Shown here piece by piece: positions 18,301 through 55,329 of a stretch of DNA of 56,498 nt (the first letter of the stretch is position 1; each line of letters opens with the position of its first letter). The stretch is from Neoconidiobolus thromboides FSU 785 (lineage: Eukaryota; Fungi; Entomophthoromycota). The translations under genes and the position numbers were made by a program. Under the pieces are notes generated by a model. The model made no database searches. It was not told the DNA's origin and saw nothing but the letters and a program-made list of their open reading frames with translations. The DNA lies in the NCBI GenBank assembly GCA_025603075.1, contig MU626392.1:1-56498 (forward strand). Reading direction: 5' to 3'.

Positions 18301-18409
18301 AACTTCTTTTAGTTCCTTTATATAGACTATAGTTTATATAAAATAAACCTCAAAATTTTTAAATAAAATTTTCATTAGGTTGAAAAAAGGGATATTAATT
18401 TAAAATTGT

Positions 18410-18507
18410 GAGAACGTATTTTTGTGTTTAACAATTTTACTAACAATTTTTCCACTCAAATAGCGCTTATAGCATGGAAAAAGTGATGAAGCTAAAAAAA
18501 CACCCTC
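18410..18507 (+). mobile_element. MITE copy, left end and TSD degenerate
   Basis: GAGAACG...CACCCTC; core CACTCAAATAGCGCTTA; flanks TTGT/ATAT. Confidence 0.85.
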
Positions 18508-18798
18508 ATATCCTTTTGGCTTTTGTAATAGTAATCACACTATAAGTGATATACCTTTATTACACTAAACTTCTAGCTAATAAAAAAGTTAAATTGTCTT
18601 TCAATTTTCCTTTTGGTTTCTTTACCTAGACTATAATTAATACAAGATAAAACTTAGTTATTAGAATAAGACTTTTGTACGTGTTAAAAAAAAGCTTAAA
18701 CAAATAGCTGATTGTTTTGAACTTATAGTTACAATGAAATGGCTTAAATTTCATCCTTTTGCTGATTTATGTTCTATTTGATCTTTAATACAGAATAT

Positions 18799-18893
18799 GG
18801 GGATGTATTTTTTTTAGGAATTTTACCAATAATCTTTCCACTCAAATAGCGCTTAAAGAATGGAAAAAAATAATGGAATCAAAAAAACCCTGC
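18799..18893 (+). mobile_element. MITE copy, right end degenerate
   Basis: ATAT-GGGGATG start; core CACTCAAATAGCGCTTAAAG. Confidence 0.85.
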
Positions 18894-19481
18894 TATATAT
18901 TAAATAACTAAGCTTTAAATCCTAGGTCTAAAATTTTATCTGATTTAACTTATTAAGTTATAAAATTAAAGCTTTTACATTTTATATAAAGCTATATTAA
19001 TTTATATGATAAGTTATTTTGATACAAATTTAAAATAAGATAAACAGGAAATTGCAATATTGAAAAAAATAAAGTAATATTTAAGATGTTAATATAAATG
19101 CTATTTTTAATTTTTAATTTTTAGTTTTTAATTTTTAACTTAAACTTTTTTATATAGGACTATATTTTTCTGTTTAAAAATGCTTATATAAATTGTAAAT
19201 ATTTTATATTTATAAAAAATAACTGAATAAAATACTATTTAAGCTGTTCAACTATTATCTTTTATTATATATACTTTTAATATAGAATATAATTAAATCA
19301 AATTGTAATAAAATTGGCTTCAAAGATATAATCCCTTAGAAAAAAGAAGTTGAAGCTATCTACGGTGTCTAATTTGATTGGCTTTCAAAGGATTGATCGA
19401 ACAAATTGAAATAAGATTTCTAAATAAAATTGCAAAATCAGAAACTAAAATTCAAAAACTTTTAATCAAACAATCTATCTA

Positions 19482-21419: not shown

Positions 21420-22895
21420 TCAATGATTATTATTTTCTAAACTACATTTATCAATTGCTTTTTTGACATTAATAATACCATATCCATATTCATTATTAGG
21501 TAAAGAATTTGATGTATCCCCACCACAACCTAATTTAGGAAAGTTAGCTGTTGCAGTTTCCCTTAATAAATTTTCAATTAACTCTACTTTTCTTTCAAGA
21601 TGTGGACAAGCAGCCATAATTAATAAAGCAGCACCTGACACATGAGGAGCTGCCATCGAAGTACCTTGAAAAGCGGAATATTTACCACCACGTATAGCAC
21701 CTGTAATATTAACTCCAGGAGCGGTAACATCAATAGCAATTTTTCTTTCTAATACTGGACCCATTGAAGAAAAACTTGGTCGATCTAATGTTAAATAGCC
21801 ATTAGCAGCTACTGAAAAAGCAGAGGGATCAATAGCAGGAGGAGAAGTCATTGATGAACAACCTAAGCTACCTTCATTACCTGCTGATACAGATAAAAAT
21901 ATACCTGCTTTTTTTAAAGCTTTCATAGCAATACCAAAGGTAGTTCTAGAACATCCTTCTTCTGGTGGACAACCATATGAATTTCCAATCACATGAGGAC
22001 GTAATTCTGGTTTTGGATTATTACCATTTAAATCAGTAGGGGCTATAAAGAATTGTAAACAGCCTAAATAAGATTCTGGAGATCCAAAATTTTGATCCAT
22101 ATTTTTACAAGCAATCCATAAAGTAGTTGGGGAAACACCAAGTCCAAATTGACCTACAACAGTTGACATTGTATGTGTACCGTGATTATTATCATCACAT
22201 GGAAATAAACTATTAATTCCACAAATACCATTTGGTCTTGTTTTATTTAATTGTTTGTTAGCATCCCACCAAGAATAATCATGACTTAATTGACCATTTT
22301 TATTACCCATATAATTAGTAAATAATGCAGGATGAGTATATTCTACTCCAGTATCTGCATTACCATAAATTAATTTACTAGCTCTTTCTAATACATTACG
22401 CTTCATTCCAGTTGCATTAATATATTTAATACTCCAATGAACACCTCCAGTCCAATCATCACTTTCAATAGCTTTAGAATTATCAATATTAGGTAAATTA
22501 CCTATTCCAGCTTTAAATTTACGATTAGTTGATATCTCTTTTATTCCTGGATAACTCATTAATTGTTCAATTAATTCAGGTTTAGCTTTGATAGCAATAG
22601 TATTGGAAATATAATAAGATTGCAAATAATTTAAGTTACCTAAACCTTGTTGTTTTTGAAGATACAATTTTAATTTTTTTTGAGATTCATTGGAATGGGA
22701 TTTTAATGTAGTAATGATGTTTTCTGGATCATTGGTAAGTGATTCTATGTTAGGGGGTGTTAATTGAATTAAACAATCTATTAATGATTCATTGTTTTTT
22801 AATTGAGATAAAACTGTAGCTGATACTTGGGCAATACTATGAATGGATGATAAAAAATAATTAAATATTATTAATATTAAAAATAAATAATTCAT
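21420..22895 (-). CDS. Secreted subtilisin-like S8 serine protease, bacillopeptidase-F-like subgroup, intronless
   Basis: Signal peptide, propeptide, catalytic Asp (NADTGV), His (HGTHTM), oxyanion Asn (AGNEG) and Ser (GTSMAAPHV). HDYSWWDA, WIACK, QFFIAPTDLNG.NP and PHVIGNSYGC are typical of BprF-like S8 enzymes. Confidence 0.93.
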   Translation of the reverse strand: MNYLFLILIIFNYFLSSIHSIAQVSATVLSQLKNNESLIDCLIQLTPPNIESLTNDPENIITTLKSHSNESQKKLKLYLQKQQGLGNLNYLQSYYISNTIAIKAKPELIEQLMSYPGIKEISTNRKFKAGIGNLPNIDNSKAIESDDWTGGVHWSIKYINATGMKRNVLERASKLIYGNADTGVEYTHPALFTNYMGNKNGQLSHDYSWWDANKQLNKTRPNGICGINSLFPCDDNNHGTHTMSTVVGQFGLGVSPTTLWIACKNMDQNFGSPESYLGCLQFFIAPTDLNGNNPKPELRPHVIGNSYGCPPEEGCSRTTFGIAMKALKKAGIFLSVSAGNEGSLGCSSMTSPPAIDPSAFSVAANGYLTLDRPSFSSMGPVLERKIAIDVTAPGVNITGAIRGGKYSAFQGTSMAAPHVSGAALLIMAACPHLERKVELIENLLRETATANFPKLGCGGDTSNSLPNNEYGYGIINVKKAIDKCSLENNNH

Positions 22896-33390: not shown

Positions 33391-34969
33391 ATAATAAAAA
33401 GTTTATTTAATAGTTCACTTTTGATATTTTCTATATACTTTACAAGCTAATACAAATAAAGTCAAGTTCTTCAATTTAATTGTAAGTTTAAAATGATTTA
33501 AAAATAATGATCAAAAACCGCTTTCAAAGGTGTATAGTACAATAAAACATTAGGGGTATATCTTTTTAAAAAACTTAAAAAAGTATTAATTTAGATTGGA
33601 CTAACAAACTATTTTTTTCAACTAAAGGGATCTTTTTCAATTATAAGTTCATATTCTTTATTTAAATTTTATAATTTTTTATTTAAATTGAAGTTTATAG
33701 TTTATCAAAATATAAATAGAGATAATTTTATTAGAAGTATTTCAAGTTAAATGAAATAGCCTAAATTTAGGGATAGCTGAATAATATTACAAATCATATT
33801 TTATACATTATTTCAAAACCTACGTTTTATACATTATTTTCGATCCGTATTCACTTATTTCTAATGGAGTTTATTAAACATCTGTAACATCATGTATAAT
33901 TTGTAAAAATCAATTTAATTAGAATTTAGTTTTACTAATTTTTTATTAAAATTTTATATTATAAAATTATTCAGATAGAATTTTATCTAAAGGCATTGAT
34001 ATTTTAAGAAAGGATTCAAGGCACTATTCTACTTTTGAAATGGTATTTTATATACAAAGCTTAATTATCTTAACTCTTGTAAAATATAAAAATAGTTGTT
34101 TAATTCCTAAAGAAATGAGTATGAATTTATAAACAAAAAATGTGCTATTAATAAACAGATATATTATAACTTTCATAATAAATACTATAATATAATTACC
34201 CTTTCCGATAAAGCGCTATTGATTATGCTATAGTAAAATTCAACAAAATTTAACAAATAGTAAATAATTGTGCAACAATAAGAGGTTATAAAAAAGGTTA
34301 TAGTAATTTAAAACAAAACATTTTAAAAAACGAATACAATAAGTATTTGTTCTTTTAAAAAATCAACCAATTTACATTTGAATGAGATTAAAAATAGTTT
34401 TAATATAAAAAGCCCCTGTTAATATTTTATTTAAAAGTGAAATAATAAAATTACTATAAAGATCCTTTTCTAAAAAAGTCCTCATTATTTGATCTTAAGT
34501 AAAATTGTTCAAGACATGTCAAGTTATCATCGACGTTCACTCCTATTAATATGCCCATAAACTTAGCAAAATGGGTTTCAAATAAAGTAAACACGTTTGT
34601 TCTTTGTATTAGTAATAGTAAAACAGCAATACAGTGGAAATTGATATTAAAGCACCTATTTTTTACTAAATTTAATCAAGTTTAGTTTATTCTATAAAGC
34701 TATTTTAAAAGTAGCCCTTTTTTTTCAGTTAAAAAATAGCCTAATTAATTGCAACAGTAAGTACCGTTTATTGGTAAAAGCAAAAAAAAGCTGTATAAAA
34801 TTTATTTTATTTTTCAGTTCTATACTACTACCGGATAAAACTTTCTCAAAAAGAGTGATTACTTTTCAAAGGACCTTATACTTTATTTTAGCTTAAAACT
34901 AAATGCTTACTCTTGAAAAAAATACGACTGATGAATTTTCATTTAATTTTAATAAAATTTTTAACAAAT

Positions 34970-35068
34970 GAGGATGTATTTTTGTGTTTAAGAACTCTAC
35001 TAACAATCTTTCTGCTTGAATAGCGTTTAAAAGGTGGAAAAAGTAATGAAATCAAAAAAAACACTCCC
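34970..35068 (+). mobile_element. MITE copy, TSD AAAT/AAAT
   Basis: GAGGATG...CACTCCC termini; identical 4-bp flanks. Confidence 0.88.
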
Positions 35069-35279
35069 AAATGTTACTTACTATTTATCGAAATTGATTT
35101 TTTTTAGATATTATATTAAATAATTTTTTTTAGTATATTTAAATAATGTGAATGGCTATAAAACAATAAATAGGGGATAAAATACTAGGAAAGATTCAAT
35201 GATAAATCAAAAGATAATGAGCTGAAGACTTCAAAAAGGATAATAATCGTTAATACTAGTACAGATTTATTTGAATAAA

Positions 35280-44158: not shown

Positions 44159-45721
44159 TGTGTATTACTAATTTTACTTATTATTTTCAGCTTAAAATCA
44201 GTATCATTATTATAATAAAAAGTTTTATTTATGGCATAATTTTAAACATTTTGATTCATAATTTTAAACAGTTTTTAGTAGTATACAAATGCAATTCTAA
44301 AATATTTAATTACTCCAGTCATTTGGTCATTCGATATTGTTTGTATCTTAATATATTAAGTTCTTCATTAAATATATTAATAGTAGTTGATATCATACTT
44401 GATTCTTTAAATTGATGAGCATGAAATCATTAAATGAAGTTGAGAGATTCTGTAGAAAGTACGAGGATGTGTTTTAAGGTTATGAAATCAGAATGTTAAT
44501 ACTCAAAACTCAAAACTCAAAACTCAAATTTTTAAAATTAATTTATTGGGCTAAAAAGTACTAATTAAAAAATCAATTAAATTATCAATTGTATATTTTA
44601 ATGATGTAAACTAATAATATCATATACTAGTAGTACAAAAAACAAGTTAACTTATTACATGTAATGAATATTGTGTATTTAACCCAATATCGATTCTACA
44701 ACTTAAATATATATGAAAATTTCATTTTTTAATCATAACCCATTGATTTCATCTAATAATATTAATTATACAACCTTTATTCGTTAACTTTACTAGTTAA
44801 ATTTAATTTATTTAATAATACTCTAACCATTTATTATTTTATCTTTTAATGAAACCTAATATATTAATATAATGTGTTCTGCTTATTATGAACTATGATT
44901 AATTTAATGGCAACATTAATTGTTTGTCAATTTCATATAAGATTGAAATACAGACAGCTATTTTTATAAACAAAGCTTGAGCTTAATTCAAAATTTGAGC
45001 ATGCAACTTTCTATATTAAGTTGCTATTATTGAAGGATAAATTTAAAAATAAACAGCCGGTTTAAGAAACAACATTATTCCTTTAAAGCCTAAAGTTTGC
45101 CAATAGCTTAATATTGTAATTATCGAATATGTAACGTAATGGGGCTTTAATAACTCCGCTACTGAGTTTTGAACGAATGAATCAATTGTAATTAGGTTAT
45201 TTACTCTACTAATTATCTATAAACTGTTACATAACATTTGTAATGTTATTCGTTTGTGGTAAATTTTCTCAGACTGGCTTAACTTCTACTTTATCAAATT
45301 GATAGTTAAGGTTGATCCGCTATTTCTGCTACTGTTTAAATTTAATTTTTAAAGTTAAAGCAAAATATTATTGGTTTAAAAATAGCAACTAAGCTTTGAA
45401 ACTCAATATTTGGAAAGTGGCATAAAAAAGGACATAGTTTCAAAAGTTTAATTTATTATCAAGCTTCTTATGTTTCATAATAGTTTTTACGTCATGTAGG
45501 TAATAGTTATGTATTTATCCTATTTGAATAGAGATAAAGCTCTGTTTAGTTTACTTTAATCTGTTTTTTATTGTGTTTAGTCAAAGAATATTGTCAATAA
45601 AGTAAATAAAATAAATTTTGATTTTGGGCAGAGTTTAAGGATAGCCCAATATAAATTAAAAATGTGATTAAGCGGAGAACTATAATAATATCAGAAAACA
45701 AATTAGTTTTCATTTATTAAA

Positions 45722-46803
45722 ATGTTAGAAAGATACATACTACCCTTAATATTAATTTTTTCAATCTTTTTAGAAGTAAGAGCACTAAATGTGGAATGTG
45801 TTGAATGCTTACCACAGCTTAGTTTAGATAATTTACAATATTTACAAGGATTATCCATACCATCTCGATTAAAACCAAATGGTAAACTACTGAAACCATT
45901 TTTACGCAAAAGAGTTAGTGGAACGGAGAACAATACAATAGTAAGAGACTTTATTTATTCTGAGTTGGAATCTTTAGATTGGAAAGTGGAACTAGATTCA
46001 TTTGAATCAGATACACCTTATGGTAAAAAAAAATTCAGTAATGTAGTCGCAATAAAGAACCCCACTGCTAGAAAGTCATTGGTATTCGCAGCTCACTTTG
46101 ATTCTAAATACTTTTCGCCACCAAATGACAATTTTGTTGCTGCTACTGATTCGGCTGTCTCTTGTGCTTTACTATTAGATATTGCTTATTCTTTAAATAA
46201 TTTATTGGAAACCAATATGGGAAATGTTACCCTTAAATTGATATTTTTTGATGGAGAAGAAGCATTTAAAGAATGGAGTTCAGAAGATTCTATTTATGGA
46301 GCAAGGTATTTGTTATTTTTTTAAAAAGAAAAAATTAATATTTTAGACATTTAGCAGATAAGTTACATACAACATCATTGTTGAATCGTATTAGAACAGC
46401 TAATCTCGGAGAAAATGAGATTGATTCAATAGAGCTATTTGTATTATTAGATTTATTAGGGTCTGAAGGCACACCTTTAATATCAATTAATAAAGAATCT
46501 GTTCACTTTTTTAATAAATTAATCCAACTAGAATCTAAACTATTCCAATACAAATTAAAACCAAATTCATTAAGACAGAGACAGTTTTTAAATTATCAAT
46601 TTGATTATAAAATCGATGACGATCATAGACCTTTCCAAGAAAAAGGTGTCTCTATATTACATTTAATTCCTGTTCCATTTCCAAAGTTTTGGCATACCTT
46701 AGGAGATAATGAATCGGTTGTTTCATCTAAAATAGTGAATCATTTAGCACTATTGTTTAGAGCTTTTATCGCAGAGTATCTCTGTCTCTTTAATAAAGAA
46801 TAA
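45722..46803 (+). CDS. Glutaminyl-peptide cyclotransferase (peptidase M28 fold), 2 exons
   Basis: Signal peptide; AAHFDSK, ATDSAVSCA, FFDGEEAF, LLDLLG, DDHRPF, WHT..D motifs. A 41-bp intron at 46306-46346 restores YGAR-HLA. Confidence 0.92.
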
Positions 46804-46872
46804 AGTATTAATTTTGAATAGTTAAAAATAGCTAGCATACTTATTTTTGTTTTTATTTCACTAAAATAAAAA

Positions 46873-47328
46873 TTATCCATTTAAATCTACTTTAAATGAA
46901 GTATTTGAGGAAATTTCTTCAACCTCTTTTAACTTGGCCAACTTTACAATCGCTTTACTTTCAGCTTCCAATGCAATAGAGTTGGAAATAAAGTATTGTC
47001 TGTAGTTTGATATTGTGCCTTCAGCTTTTAAGGAATTTAATACTTTAATTATACCTTCGACACTTTTTTTATTATGATCTTGTAATTGGTGGATATAAGC
47101 TTCTTGATCTTGACTAGCTTTAGCGTGTACCTCTTCATCAGTAGGACTTAATTGTATCATTATAGGAATCATCTGTGGCATTTTACGTGAATTGGATTGT
47201 TCCATCATTTCTCTTACTTTAGGATTTATTTTTGAACTATAGTCGTTCATTTTAAATGGTTTAGGAAAAGAGCAGTTAACAATACAAAACAATAATGAAA
47301 TGTATATTACAAATATTATTCTTTTCAT
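46873..47328 (-). CDS. Secreted stand-alone subtilase-propeptide-like protein (putative I9-type inhibitor/chaperone)
   Basis: Signal peptide plus a region colinear with the propeptide of the S8 protease at 21420-22895 (IQLSP/IQLTP; YFISNSIALEA/YYISNTIAIKA; EISSNTSFK/EISTNRKFK). No catalytic domain; only 69 bp separate it from the next gene's stop. Confidence 0.75.
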   Translation of the reverse strand: MKRIIFVIYISLLFCIVNCSFPKPFKMNDYSSKINPKVREMMEQSNSRKMPQMIPIMIQLSPTDEEVHAKASQDQEAYIHQLQDHNKKSVEGIIKVLNSLKAEGTISNYRQYFISNSIALEAESKAIVKLAKLKEVEEISSNTSFKVDLNG

Positions 47329-47773
47329 TTTATTTAATAAAATACTGAAAAGTATTTTGTTTTAAAGTTTGGCTTTTGTTACTCTACTAAACATGTTTAT
47401 CACTTGATTATAAATAATTGGGCATGTTTTTTGTTCAAAATTTCCGAGGGGTTTCCAGCTCATTTTGTAATTAATTCGTTTGGACTTTGTCGTTTTAAAC
47501 TTTGAGGATTTTGCTCTCTACTTAACAAACTTTCATTGTATTTTGGTATTTAACTAATTGACTAAAAATAAAAATCAGAGTTATAATGAATTAAAAAGAA
47601 CTTATAAAATTAATTTTTGGATACTAAAATAAAAAAACTATTAAAGTCAGGATTTCAAAGCATTATTGTAAAAGCTAATAGTTTGTTTGTTAAATAATAT
47701 TAGACATTTTATTATTATTTATCTCACTTAATATTTTTACATGCTTTTTTTCTATTTTACCAATTTAATACTT

Positions 47774-47872
47774 GGGGATGTTTTTTTTGACTTCATTACT
47801 TTTTCCATTTTTTAAGCGCTATTTGAGTGGAGAAGCTATTAATAAAATTCGTAAACACAAAAATACATCCTC
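47774..47872 (-). mobile_element. MITE copy, flanks ACTT/ATTT
   Basis: GGGGATG...CATCCTC termini; one TSD mismatch. Confidence 0.88.
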
Positions 47873-47890
47873 ATTTATTAATTAGCATAT

Positions 47891-47986
47891 AGGGGTGTTT
47901 TTTTTTGGCTTCATTATTTTTCCATTTTTTAAGCGCTATTTGAGTGGAAAAATTATTAGCAAAGTTCGTAAACACAATATATCCCC
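47891..47986 (-). mobile_element. MITE copy, TSD ATAT/ATAT
   Basis: AGGGGTG...TATCCCC; the right ATAT is shared with the next copy. Confidence 0.88.
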
Positions 47987-47990
47987 ATAT

Positions 47991-48086
47991 GGAGTGTTTT
48001 TGATTCTGTCTTTTTTTTTCGCTTTTTAAGTACAATTTGAGAGGAAAAACTATTAGTAAAATTATCAGATAAAGATATATACCCAC
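47991..48086 (-). mobile_element. Degenerate MITE copy abutting the previous copy's TSD
   Basis: GGAGTG...TACCCAC; similar internal layout with many substitutions. Confidence 0.7.
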
Positions 48087-48145
48087 ATTAAGTTTTTTGT
48101 TGCAATTTTTTTTTAATAACTTTAATTTAAGTATTTCTAACATCT

Positions 48146-48244
48146 GAGGATGTATTTTTGTGTTTACGAATTTCACTAACAAATTTTCCATTTAAAGAGC
48201 GCTTAAAAAATGGAAAAAGTAATGAAGCCAAAAAAAACACCCTT
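48146..48244 (+). mobile_element. MITE copy, TSD ATCT/ATCT
   Basis: GAGGATG...CACCCTT termini; identical 4-bp flanks. Confidence 0.9.
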
Positions 48245-48663
48245 ATCTACTAGTATAGTTATTTAACTTTCAGTTTAATATTACTAAAAGGGATATAAAG
48301 TAATTTTTAAATATATAAAATATTATTTTCGATTCCTCTATTTTTATCTGTTCAATAGAGTTTTGATATAATAAGTAAATGATTCGAAACTTAATGTATA
48401 TTTGTATTATAAGTCATCTTAATTTGTTTAGTAGTGTTAGCTACCAAGTTATATAACGAATAGCAAAAAAAAGGATAAGCTCCAAAAAAAAGTAGATTGC
48501 TTTCAAAATTTGATTTTGTTCAACCAATAAAACTAAAGGATCTAAACAGCTGTCAAAGTTCGATTTTAAGCTCAAACTTTTATAGAAAACTAATTTCAAA
48601 AAACCAATTTTAAGCTAACTTGATAATTTTTGATGAAAATTTAATATAATATTGAAAAGAAAT

Positions 48664-51522: not shown

Positions 51523-51855
51523 AAATGAATATTTTTTTGATTCCACTAAAATTTTGTTAAACTATGCTATAAATGATTCTATTTTATTTTTAAAGTAACT
51601 TGACAATATCTAAATTTTTATTAGCCATTATTTATTATTTAAATATAATACATATTTGTATAGTATTTAATATCAGTGATCTAAGTCTTTGTTCTTTATG
51701 TATTCACAAGGTAGTATTTTAAAAGAGCTAATATTTCAAAGCATTTGTAATATCAAAAGTATATTGTAATTAACAGATAAAATTTAACTTTTATTAGCTT
51801 AATAAGAGCTATTAAATATTTTTATATACTTGAAATTAATTTTCTATTTATATAT

Positions 51856-51951
51856 GGACATGTATTTTTGTTTAAGAATTTTATTAACAACCTTTCTACT
51901 CAAATAGTGCTTAAAAGATAGAAAAAGTAATGAAATAAAAAAAACATCCCC
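51856..51951 (+). mobile_element. MITE copy, TSD ATAT/ATAT
   Basis: GGACATG...CATCCCC termini. Confidence 0.88.
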
Positions 51952-52007
51952 ATATTGATGTAATTAATCATCAACCTTTTTTAATAAAAAAATTTAGTTT
52001 AATATAT

Positions 52008-52106
52008 GGGGATGATTTTTTTGACTTCATTACTTTTTCCACCTTTTAAGCGCTATTCGAGCGGAAAATTTGTTAGTAAAATTCTTAAACGCAAAAATAC
52101 GTCCCC
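52008..52106 (-). mobile_element. MITE copy (CpG-retaining), TSD ATAT/ATAT
   Basis: GGGGATG...CGTCCCC termini; retains TTCGAGCGG, AACGC and TACGT. Confidence 0.92.
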
Positions 52107-52110
52107 ATAT

Positions 52111-52209
52111 GGCGGTGTTTTTTTTGGCTTCATTACTTTTTCTATCTTTTAAGCGCTATTTGAGTGGAAAAATTATCAGCAAAATTGTTAAACACAAAAA
52201 TATATCCCC
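52111..52209 (-). mobile_element. MITE copy, TSD ATAT/ATAT, shares its left TSD with the previous copy
   Basis: GGCGGTG...TATCCCC termini. Confidence 0.9.
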
Positions 52210-52271
52210 ATATGCTTGTTTATTTTTATCAAATATTAATTTTAATACTCAAATGAATAGAGTATCATTAA

Positions 52272-53996: not shown

Positions 53997-54386
53997 TTTA
54001 TTTAATTGTTAGTGTTTATATACTCTTTTTTAGAAAAAGTTTAATAATGTAATATACATATAGTTCTTCTTATCACGTCAATGGTAAAATGATTTCGGTT
54101 TATGTTAACTGGATGAATTTTTAGTTCTATTTCTTTTTAAACTTAAATTGCTTTCGGCGCTTAAAATTTAAAAGCTGAACACCGATTATTAGGTTTTCCC
54201 ATTAATTCCTTAACTTATAAAGAAAAAATCAATATTATTATTTCAGTTAATTGATTTATTAATTCAATATGTTAATGTCTTTTATTGAAGTTTAAAGAAC
54301 TAGTTTTAATAATCTATTGAAACAATTTTTTTAGATCAATAAAAGTAGTTTTAAATAGTTGACTAATATTAATAAATAAAACATAT

Positions 54387-54483
54387 GGGGATGTATTTTT
54401 GTATTTAAGAATTTTACTAACAAATTTTCCACTCAAATAGTACTTAAGATGGAAAAAGTAATGAAGCCAAAAAAAACACCCTC
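54387..54483 (+). mobile_element. MITE copy, TSD ATAT/ATAT
   Basis: GGGGATG...CACCCTC termini. Confidence 0.9.
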
Positions 54484-55329
54484 ATATTTAAAAGTTACTT
54501 AATGGATTGAGTTTTTAACTAAAAATCTTTAAATGAATTGAAACTAAGTCCAAAATGTTATTACATTTAAAATTAGATGCAATATTTTTGTCGCGTCATA
54601 GCCATAGTATGGAAAAAATCCAATAAAACTAAAGTAAAAAAACTGATAATAATTTTTAAAGGTGAACAAAATTAAGAAGTTCCATAGTGCCATTTTCAAT
54701 TTTGCTGTCTTTGTTGAAAATTATTTATCTAATTTTCTACTTCAGTTTTTTGATATTTTTTCCTTGCTATGACTGTAGTGTGATAAAAATGCTGTACACT
54801 AAACCAGTTATTTTAAATTTACTGTCATTCTCTAATATAAACAAAAAGGTTAGTTAATTATTGGATTTAAGAGAAAAGGTGGGGAAGTAGTAAGATACAC
54901 ACTCTTTTTAGTCAAAGCTTGAGATTGGAACCTTAGTCTTCTCAAAGAAGAGGGAATTACTTACCAAAGGGATGCTGTTTATATACCCGTTAAAGTAGTG
55001 AAAAGTGATTTGTCTATTGAAGTATTCTTACATTTTCGGACATTTTTGATCTCATTTGTAATAGTGAGTTATTTGTAAAATCGAATGATTCAAGGAATTT
55101 AAAAATAAGGCAAATAAAATAAATTAAAAATCCATACATTCGATATACAATTTCAGTAATAGTTCGAAGCAATTTTATATAAGTAAAAAGCTAAATATAA
55201 AGAAACACGTAATTTATTTAAATAATTAGTTGAAATAGAATACCAAAACATGTTCTTTGTTAATATTAATAAAACTTACTTAACCTTACTTTTATGTTGA
55301 AACTATAAACCAGATAAAGTTAAACTAAT

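Follow-up and report, generated by a model that had tools for sequence, protein, structure and literature searches.

On its reverse strand, the window (the whole stretch of 56,498 nucleotides that was analyzed, contig MU626392.1 of Neoconidiobolus thromboides FSU 785) contains an open reading frame (ORF) for a protein of 151 amino acids, which ends in ...FKVDLNG and is homologous to the prodomain of an S8 protease encoded 24 kb away. The features of relevance are as follows.

46873-47328, reverse strand: free propeptide-like protein, complete single-exon coding sequence of 151 amino acids, stop codon at 46873-46875 (from the ORF list)
47269-47328, reverse strand: probable signal peptide, residues 1-20, consisting of MKR, a hydrophobic core (4-17), and NCS (hydropathy scan)
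47173-47250, reverse strand: N-terminal helix extension before the I9 core, residues 27-52, with the helix at ORF residues 36-46 (AF2 model)
46903-47172, reverse strand: I9-type beta-alpha-beta-beta-alpha-beta core, residues 53-142 (AF2, VIA-align, family HMM)
46876-46902, reverse strand: C-terminal tail TSFKVDLNG, residues 143-151, with the N-x-x-F-K motif; presumed active-site-binding segment (alignment, models)
46788-46872, reverse strand: 3' UTR of the ORF (RNA contig ends at 46835/46841)
45722-46803, forward strand: convergent gene, glutaminyl-cyclase-like by ORF content, exons 45722-46303 and 46345-46803, which bounds the ORF on its 3' side
21420-22895, reverse strand: S8 subtilase proenzyme of 491 amino acids, homologous to the ORF domain (BLASTP, Pfam, AF2)

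The window has about 25% G+C and contains poly-Asn tracts, very short introns, and MITE-type repeats. The MITE-like repeats lie at 47773-48250 and at about 10 other places, for example 1638-2125, 18392-18897, 34956-35088, 51830-52237, and 54380-54502. They reach word depths in the thousands in RNA assemblies, and the same family occurs at 75-90% identity in loci of assembly GCA_025603075.1.

Transcription was analyzed over positions 45400-48400 with assemblies of four public runs from three studies (X1, X3, X5, and X6), which are flagged only as "RNA?". As the 41-nt GT..AG intron of the neighboring gene (46304-46344, joint 46303/46345) was removed in all four runs and the intergenic stretch upstream of the ORF (47420-47720) had virtually no coverage, these runs are RNA-derived. 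The ORF was covered by contigs spanning 46835-47279 (X1), 46841-47218 (X3), 47006-47313 (X5), and 45513-47332 (X6), the last of which stems from a relative that is about 7% diverged and has the coding sequence without an indel. Neither joints nor indels were found inside the coding sequence in contigs of any of the four runs, and, in the subset of differences that was listed, the one inside the coding sequence (position 47230, run X1) is a synonymous AAA to AAG exchange at a third codon position. The contigs terminated 30-40 nt past the stop codon (46835/46841), which agrees with the expectation of the preliminary description that the transcript would end at this ORF. It had also been stated that there is no room for a catalytic domain, and this holds: the stop of the convergent gene is only 70 nt away from the stop codon of the ORF, and a tblastn search with the protease across the window detected no catalytic-domain remnant besides the protease itself. 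The ORF is a real, transcribed, stand-alone gene without a catalytic exon.

The ORF and its convergent neighbor have 3' ends that are no more than about 50-90 nt apart. As the X6 contig spans both genes, their 3' UTRs probably overlap. A single contig of run X3 lacked a 53-nt GT..AG intron in the 3' UTR of the ORF (46788-46840, reverse strand). The spliced form runs on for 71 nt antisense to the last codons of the neighboring gene and may stem from a chimeric assembly or from a longer, alternative form of the 3' UTR; as the intron follows the stop codon, the protein is unaffected.

The N-terminus of the ORF consists of MKR, 14 hydrophobic residues, and NCS, with a Kyte-Doolittle peak of 3.0 at residues 4-14. 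With its basic start, hydrophobic core, and small-residue end, this leader probably is a signal peptide, and it suggests that the protein is secreted. The signal peptide noted in the preliminary description is thus borne out in its shape by hydropathy, but database entries disagree on the start: a public protein collection and the ESM Atlas contain the protein only from Met27 (47248-47250), as a leaderless form of 125 amino acids. If real, the Met27 start would yield a cytosolic protein; it is probably the result of an automatic gene call that hides the likely secretion signal. With regard to the RNA, the X6 contig includes the first ATG and the bin 47319-47419 has depth in X5, while three of the four longest contigs end short of this ATG.

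The S8 protease at 21420-22895 is composed of a signal peptide, a prodomain at about residues 22-130, a linker (131-150), and a catalytic domain with the residues D181, H238, N305, and S413 (Pfam PF00082, Peptidase_S8, at 180-473). Within its residues 1-23 (22826-22895, reverse strand), the -3/-1 rule would allow a cut after S-I-A, which would generate an N-terminal Gln (QVSAT...). BLASTP aligned ORF residues 53-150 with protease residues 38-132, wholly upstream of the catalytic domain, with 30% identity over 98 amino acids, one 3-residue gap, and an E-value of 5e-11. The gapless match of about 70 residues that had been noted before was reproduced as a 69-residue segment (ORF 78-146 and protease 60-128, the protease segment being the one quoted first in the preliminary description). 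It has 21 identities (30.4%) and a BLOSUM62 score of 95, compared to a maximum of 36 in 20,000 shuffles. The upstream IQLTP/IQLSP pair was also found, at protease residue 43 and ORF residue 58, respectively. The N-x-x-F-K tail motif is common to the ORF and the protease prodomain, with N116, F119, and K120 being invariant in the pairwise alignment.

A direct Pfam match to Inhibitor_I9 (PF05922), which had been suggested as a check, was not obtained for the ORF at E<=1, and the prodomain of the protease likewise lacked a Pfam I9 match. When the ORF and the whole protease were scanned, no I9, PopD, or fervidolysin-prodomain model was found, and in place of these there were only weak chance matches (E 0.007-0.05). 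Membership in the family becomes visible through profiles and structure only. A profile made of the two window sequences (the ORF and the protease prodomain) was searched against 1.84 billion representatives and returned 282 proteins at E<=1e-3, most of which were S8 proteases of 400-2400 amino acids that aligned near their N-termini; many short proteins were also among them. PF05922 was found in the domain regions of 21 of the 42 aligned relatives (best E 4e-8), and one free relative of 160 amino acids passed the gathering score of this model with 33.1 bits (cut-off 21.2). In a jackknife approach, we used a family HMM of 40 relatives from which both window sequences had been left out. This HMM scored the ORF with 100 bits over residues 33-148, and the genuine prodomain of the window protease with 90 bits. 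The ORF is therefore a member of the subtilase propeptide/inhibitor I9 superfamily (MEROPS I9).

The two strongest non-self matches of the two-sequence profile were proteins of 5373 and 1921 amino acids that matched with 3 and 10 stretches, respectively, on a long helix and look like compositional false positives. The 1921-residue protein was dropped as such, since Pfam showed it to be a coiled-coil/low-complexity protein. A PDB sequence search with the same profile gave nothing meaningful, and when the ORF and the protease prodomain served as queries in a word-index protein search, the only proteins returned were those of the window itself, with no orthologue outside close relatives.

Given the alignment of the relatives, AF2 predicted the structure of the ORF protein with high confidence (pLDDT 89.2, pTM 0.81). 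The model comprises an extra helix (residues 10-20 in model numbering), followed by the element order E-H-E-E-H-E. The proenzyme of the protease was modeled equally well (pLDDT 89.8, pTM 0.90), and the seven secondary-structure elements of the ORF model correspond one-to-one to those in the first 123 residues of the proenzyme model. The N-terminal helix is likewise present in the proenzyme model (residues 26-33) and in the N-propeptide of Tk-SP (ProN-Tk-SP). In an exhaustive VIA-align search with the ORF model, the best nine rows were all subtilase prodomains or POIA1, with Z-scores of 6.7-9.7. ProN-Tk-SP (3afg) ranked first with a Z-score of 9.7, followed by the PCSK9 prodomain (7.6), POIA1 (7.6), and then the PAM, CspB, and subtilisin prodomains; plant MORF9 was also among the matches (Z 6.1). 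Foldseek had ProN-Tk-SP as its top match as well, with a probability of 0.99, though E-values were weak (0.14), and the ESM-Atlas structure search identified the N-termini of S8 peptidases with TM-scores of 0.75-0.80.

The models also bear on the position of the C-terminus. In the proenzyme model, F127-K128 form a short ordered strand (pLDDT about 86), after which the linker 131-150 is disordered (pLDDT 50-60). This fits the earlier remark that the ORF stops cleanly about where a propeptide would end. In the structural alignment, the C-terminus of POIA1 coincides with ORF residue 148 (122 in model numbering), within three residues of the ORF end. As the N-x-x-F-K motif is retained and the ORF ends five residues after it, the protein appears to stop where the structured propeptide stops, and the motif that inhibition presumably requires at the C-terminal tail would be in place.

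To place the ORF among S8 prodomains, we compared it with 11 prodomains of the fungal clade using BLASTP. The window protease was the second-weakest match (E 3e-10), and five other fungal-clade prodomains had clearly better E-values between 2e-17 and 4e-14. All identities were in the range of about 28-37%, which points to an ancient free gene rather than to a recent duplication of the 5' end of the protease gene. In a quick maximum-likelihood tree of 136 prodomains, from which partial rows had been left out (profile start after 20 or end before 105), the ORF fell into a group of 12 rows with a weak SH-aLRT support of 79 and was not sister to the window protease. The group consists of the ORF, the window protease and its orthologues, an S8 protease of C. 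coronatus, other fungal S8 genes, and three free forms. Loci of assembly GCA_025603075.1 hold an S8 gene that is 57% identical to the window protease.

Free forms were also found elsewhere. Two propeptide-only genes for proteins of 140 and 143 amino acids exist in assembly GCA_014839935.2 (L001:3998-4423 and L003:4001-4432), which is probably that of Entomophthora muscae. No S8 catalytic similarity was detected within 2.4-4 kb of either gene. The 140-residue form ends three residues after the last strand and does not have the F-K tail motif. A third free propeptide-only gene of the same fungal clade is located at L009:761-1147 (Logan SRR18067481). In the weak tree, the two Entomophthora forms were on another sub-branch than the ORF. 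This hints that free forms may have arisen more than once, which the tree is too weak to prove. Bacterial metagenomes contained complete-looking free forms, too, together with some short matches that clearly are fragments of long S8 genes. The partial gene downstream of one bacterial free form had no Pfam match.

Independently encoded I9 proteins are well known. Free propeptide-like inhibitors include PBI2 of yeast, PoIA1/2 of Pleurotus, plant inhibitors, and TrI9 of T. reesei (bioRxiv 10.64898/2026.05.05.722857), and Plasmodium SUB1-ProM is a secreted, potent, and selective inhibitor of SUB1 that is encoded beside subtilase genes (PMC6993865). The statement that free I9 inhibitors exist is thus borne out by PBI2, PoIA1, TrI9, and SUB1-ProM, for which inhibition has been demonstrated. 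The suggestion of an undescribed control system, however, goes too far, as yeast, Pleurotus, Trichoderma, plants, and Plasmodium are all known to possess such inhibitors. The cuticle-degrading role that the preliminary description connected with the protease is a guess. Known free I9 proteins dock with their sheet onto helices of the protease and place the C-terminal tail in the cleft.

SUB1-ProM of Plasmodium falciparum resembles the ORF in being independently encoded, in its prodomain-like core, in its route through the secretory pathway (probable in case of the ORF), and in having subtilase genes on the same chromosome stretch. It differs in that its tight syntenic locus adjoins the subtilase genes and in that it is most similar to the prodomain of its target, whereas the ORF is 24 kb away from the protease gene and shows no such preference. 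The S8 subfamily is also a different one, and inhibition, which has been measured for SUB1-ProM, is presumed for the ORF protein. POIA1 of Pleurotus ostreatus (PDB 1v5i chain B, in complex with subtilisin BPN') is likewise a fungal free I9 inhibitor and superimposes on the ORF model with an rmsd of 2.1 A over 72 of its 76 residues (Z 7.6). However, its sequence identity is only 15%, it does not have the N-terminal helix extension, and it is related to proteinase-K/subtilisin-type prodomains without evident kinship to the bacterial-type S8 family. PBI2 and TrI9 share with the ORF that they are independently encoded fungal I9 proteins that were missed by sequence searches and found by structure, and they are predicted to bind with a C-terminal loop in the protease cleft. 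In contrast to the ORF protein with its leader peptide, PBI2 is a cytosolic protein whose target is vacuolar protease B. In TrI9, the I9 core makes up the last 70 residues and is preceded by a long, unrelated N-terminal region, whereas the ORF has a prodomain-type N-terminal helix. The N-propeptide of Tk-SP from Thermococcus kodakaraensis (PDB 3afg) is the best structural match, extending over both the I9 core and the helix at the N-terminus, but it is a covalent part of a proenzyme and only 13-16% identical to the ORF.

As the gene is separate and transcribed, its product is probably secreted, the fold is that of I9, and the protein ends where a propeptide would end, the most reasonable function is that of a free inhibitor or trans-chaperone. 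In our view, the protein probably acts as an inhibitor or folding chaperone on an S8 enzyme of the fungus itself. Of the corresponding earlier proposal, the independent coding, transcription, probable secretion, and I9 fold were thus supported, while the action itself is judged by analogy. The protein probably originated from the prodomain of a bacterial-type (bacillopeptidase-F-like) S8 family that is expanded in entomophthoralean fungi; the catalytic part was either lost or never present, and the propeptide gene has persisted on its own. Once secreted, the protein would bind a mature S8 catalytic domain by packing its beta-sheet against the two helices at the surface of that domain and by placing its C-terminal tail (...S-F-K...) in the substrate cleft. 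From the analogy to the known systems, we infer that such binding would result in a tight, possibly temporary inhibition and perhaps also in folding help in trans.

The preliminary description had gone further and had regarded the ORF and the protease 24 kb away as a candidate pair. It is indeed attractive to think of a dedicated inhibitor or chaperone of just this enzyme, as both genes are on the same strand of the same 56-kb contig, their sequences are homologous with the N-x-x-F-K tail motif in both, and SUB1-ProM sets a precedent for a gene that adjoins those of subtilases. We nevertheless consider such a dedicated pair unlikely. Nine of the ten other fungal-clade prodomains match the ORF better than that of the window protease does, the tree does not join the two, and 24 kb with many intervening genes is no adjacency and no linkage. 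Furthermore, a related fungus, Conidiobolus coronatus NRRL 28638 (GCA_001566745.1), has 60 S8 genes (PMC12387763), and resemblance to a prodomain alone does not tell which enzyme a free inhibitor targets. Because of the weak match, the lack of pairing in the tree, and the many S8 genes in such genomes, the window protease is only one candidate target. The ORF resembles none of the fungus's own prodomains in particular, which would also suit a secreted inhibitor of foreign subtilases, be it of an insect host or of competing microbes, and the probable signal peptide of a fungus that appears to be insect-associated points in the same direction. This is improbable in our eyes, since the ORF clusters, albeit weakly, with the fungus's own S8 prodomains, and every characterized free I9 protein acts on endogenous proteases.

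It is also conceivable that the protein has an I9 fold but does not inhibit, and instead serves purely as a folding chaperone, as a secretion escort of the PopD type, or as an unrelated binding protein. The I9 fold has been reused, as exemplified by MORF9, and the ESM feature neighbors of the ORF include clusters of PopD (score 0.93), which in Myxococcus is a small separate protein that controls the subtilisin-like protease PopC. However, the Pfam model of PopD (PF27478) matched neither the ORF nor any of the 42 relatives or five free forms, and the ORF has retained the C-terminal tail motif of genuine prodomains, which leaves only a slim chance for a non-inhibitory role. Least of all do we believe that a truncated S8 gene is decaying here or that the ORF is the first exon of a longer one. 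The word search, which detected no orthologue beyond close relatives, could be taken to indicate a relic, but the gene is old, with about 30% identity to any prodomain, and nevertheless has an open frame, a leader, and a confidently predicted fold, and its family-profile score exceeds that of a live prodomain. Transcription in four runs without internal joints, a transcript that ends shortly after the stop codon, the negative tblastn search for a catalytic remnant, and the convergent gene in the DNA downstream make both variants very unlikely.

A propeptide-like protein acting in trans is an already established principle, so no new mechanism is involved. The newness is modest and lies in a free form that derives from a bacterial-type S8 prodomain and has an extra N-terminal helix and a probable leader. 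A literature search for a free I9 inhibitor in Entomophthoromycotina found none, which is weak evidence of absence, and it seems that none has been described before in this group. With the ORF and at least two Entomophthora muscae genes, one may speculate that entomophthoralean fungi have repeatedly spun off secreted free prodomains from a bacterial-type S8 family that looks horizontally acquired. Collectively, the resulting proteins would act as inhibitors in trans, either to adjust the activity of a very large set of secreted subtilases or to counter foreign subtilases while an insect is being infected, but we regard this wider scenario as rather doubtful.

Genome annotations miss genes of this kind, as Pfam is blind to the ORF and one automatic call drops its leader. 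Protease counts alone may therefore overstate the active protease capacity of such fungi. Should the ORF protein inhibit subtilases that the fungus itself secretes, it would add a regulator to the set of proteases with which entomophthoralean fungi are believed to attack insect cuticle. Free I9 inhibitors would then also be known from a bacterial-type S8 subfamily and from a fungal lineage that diverged early.
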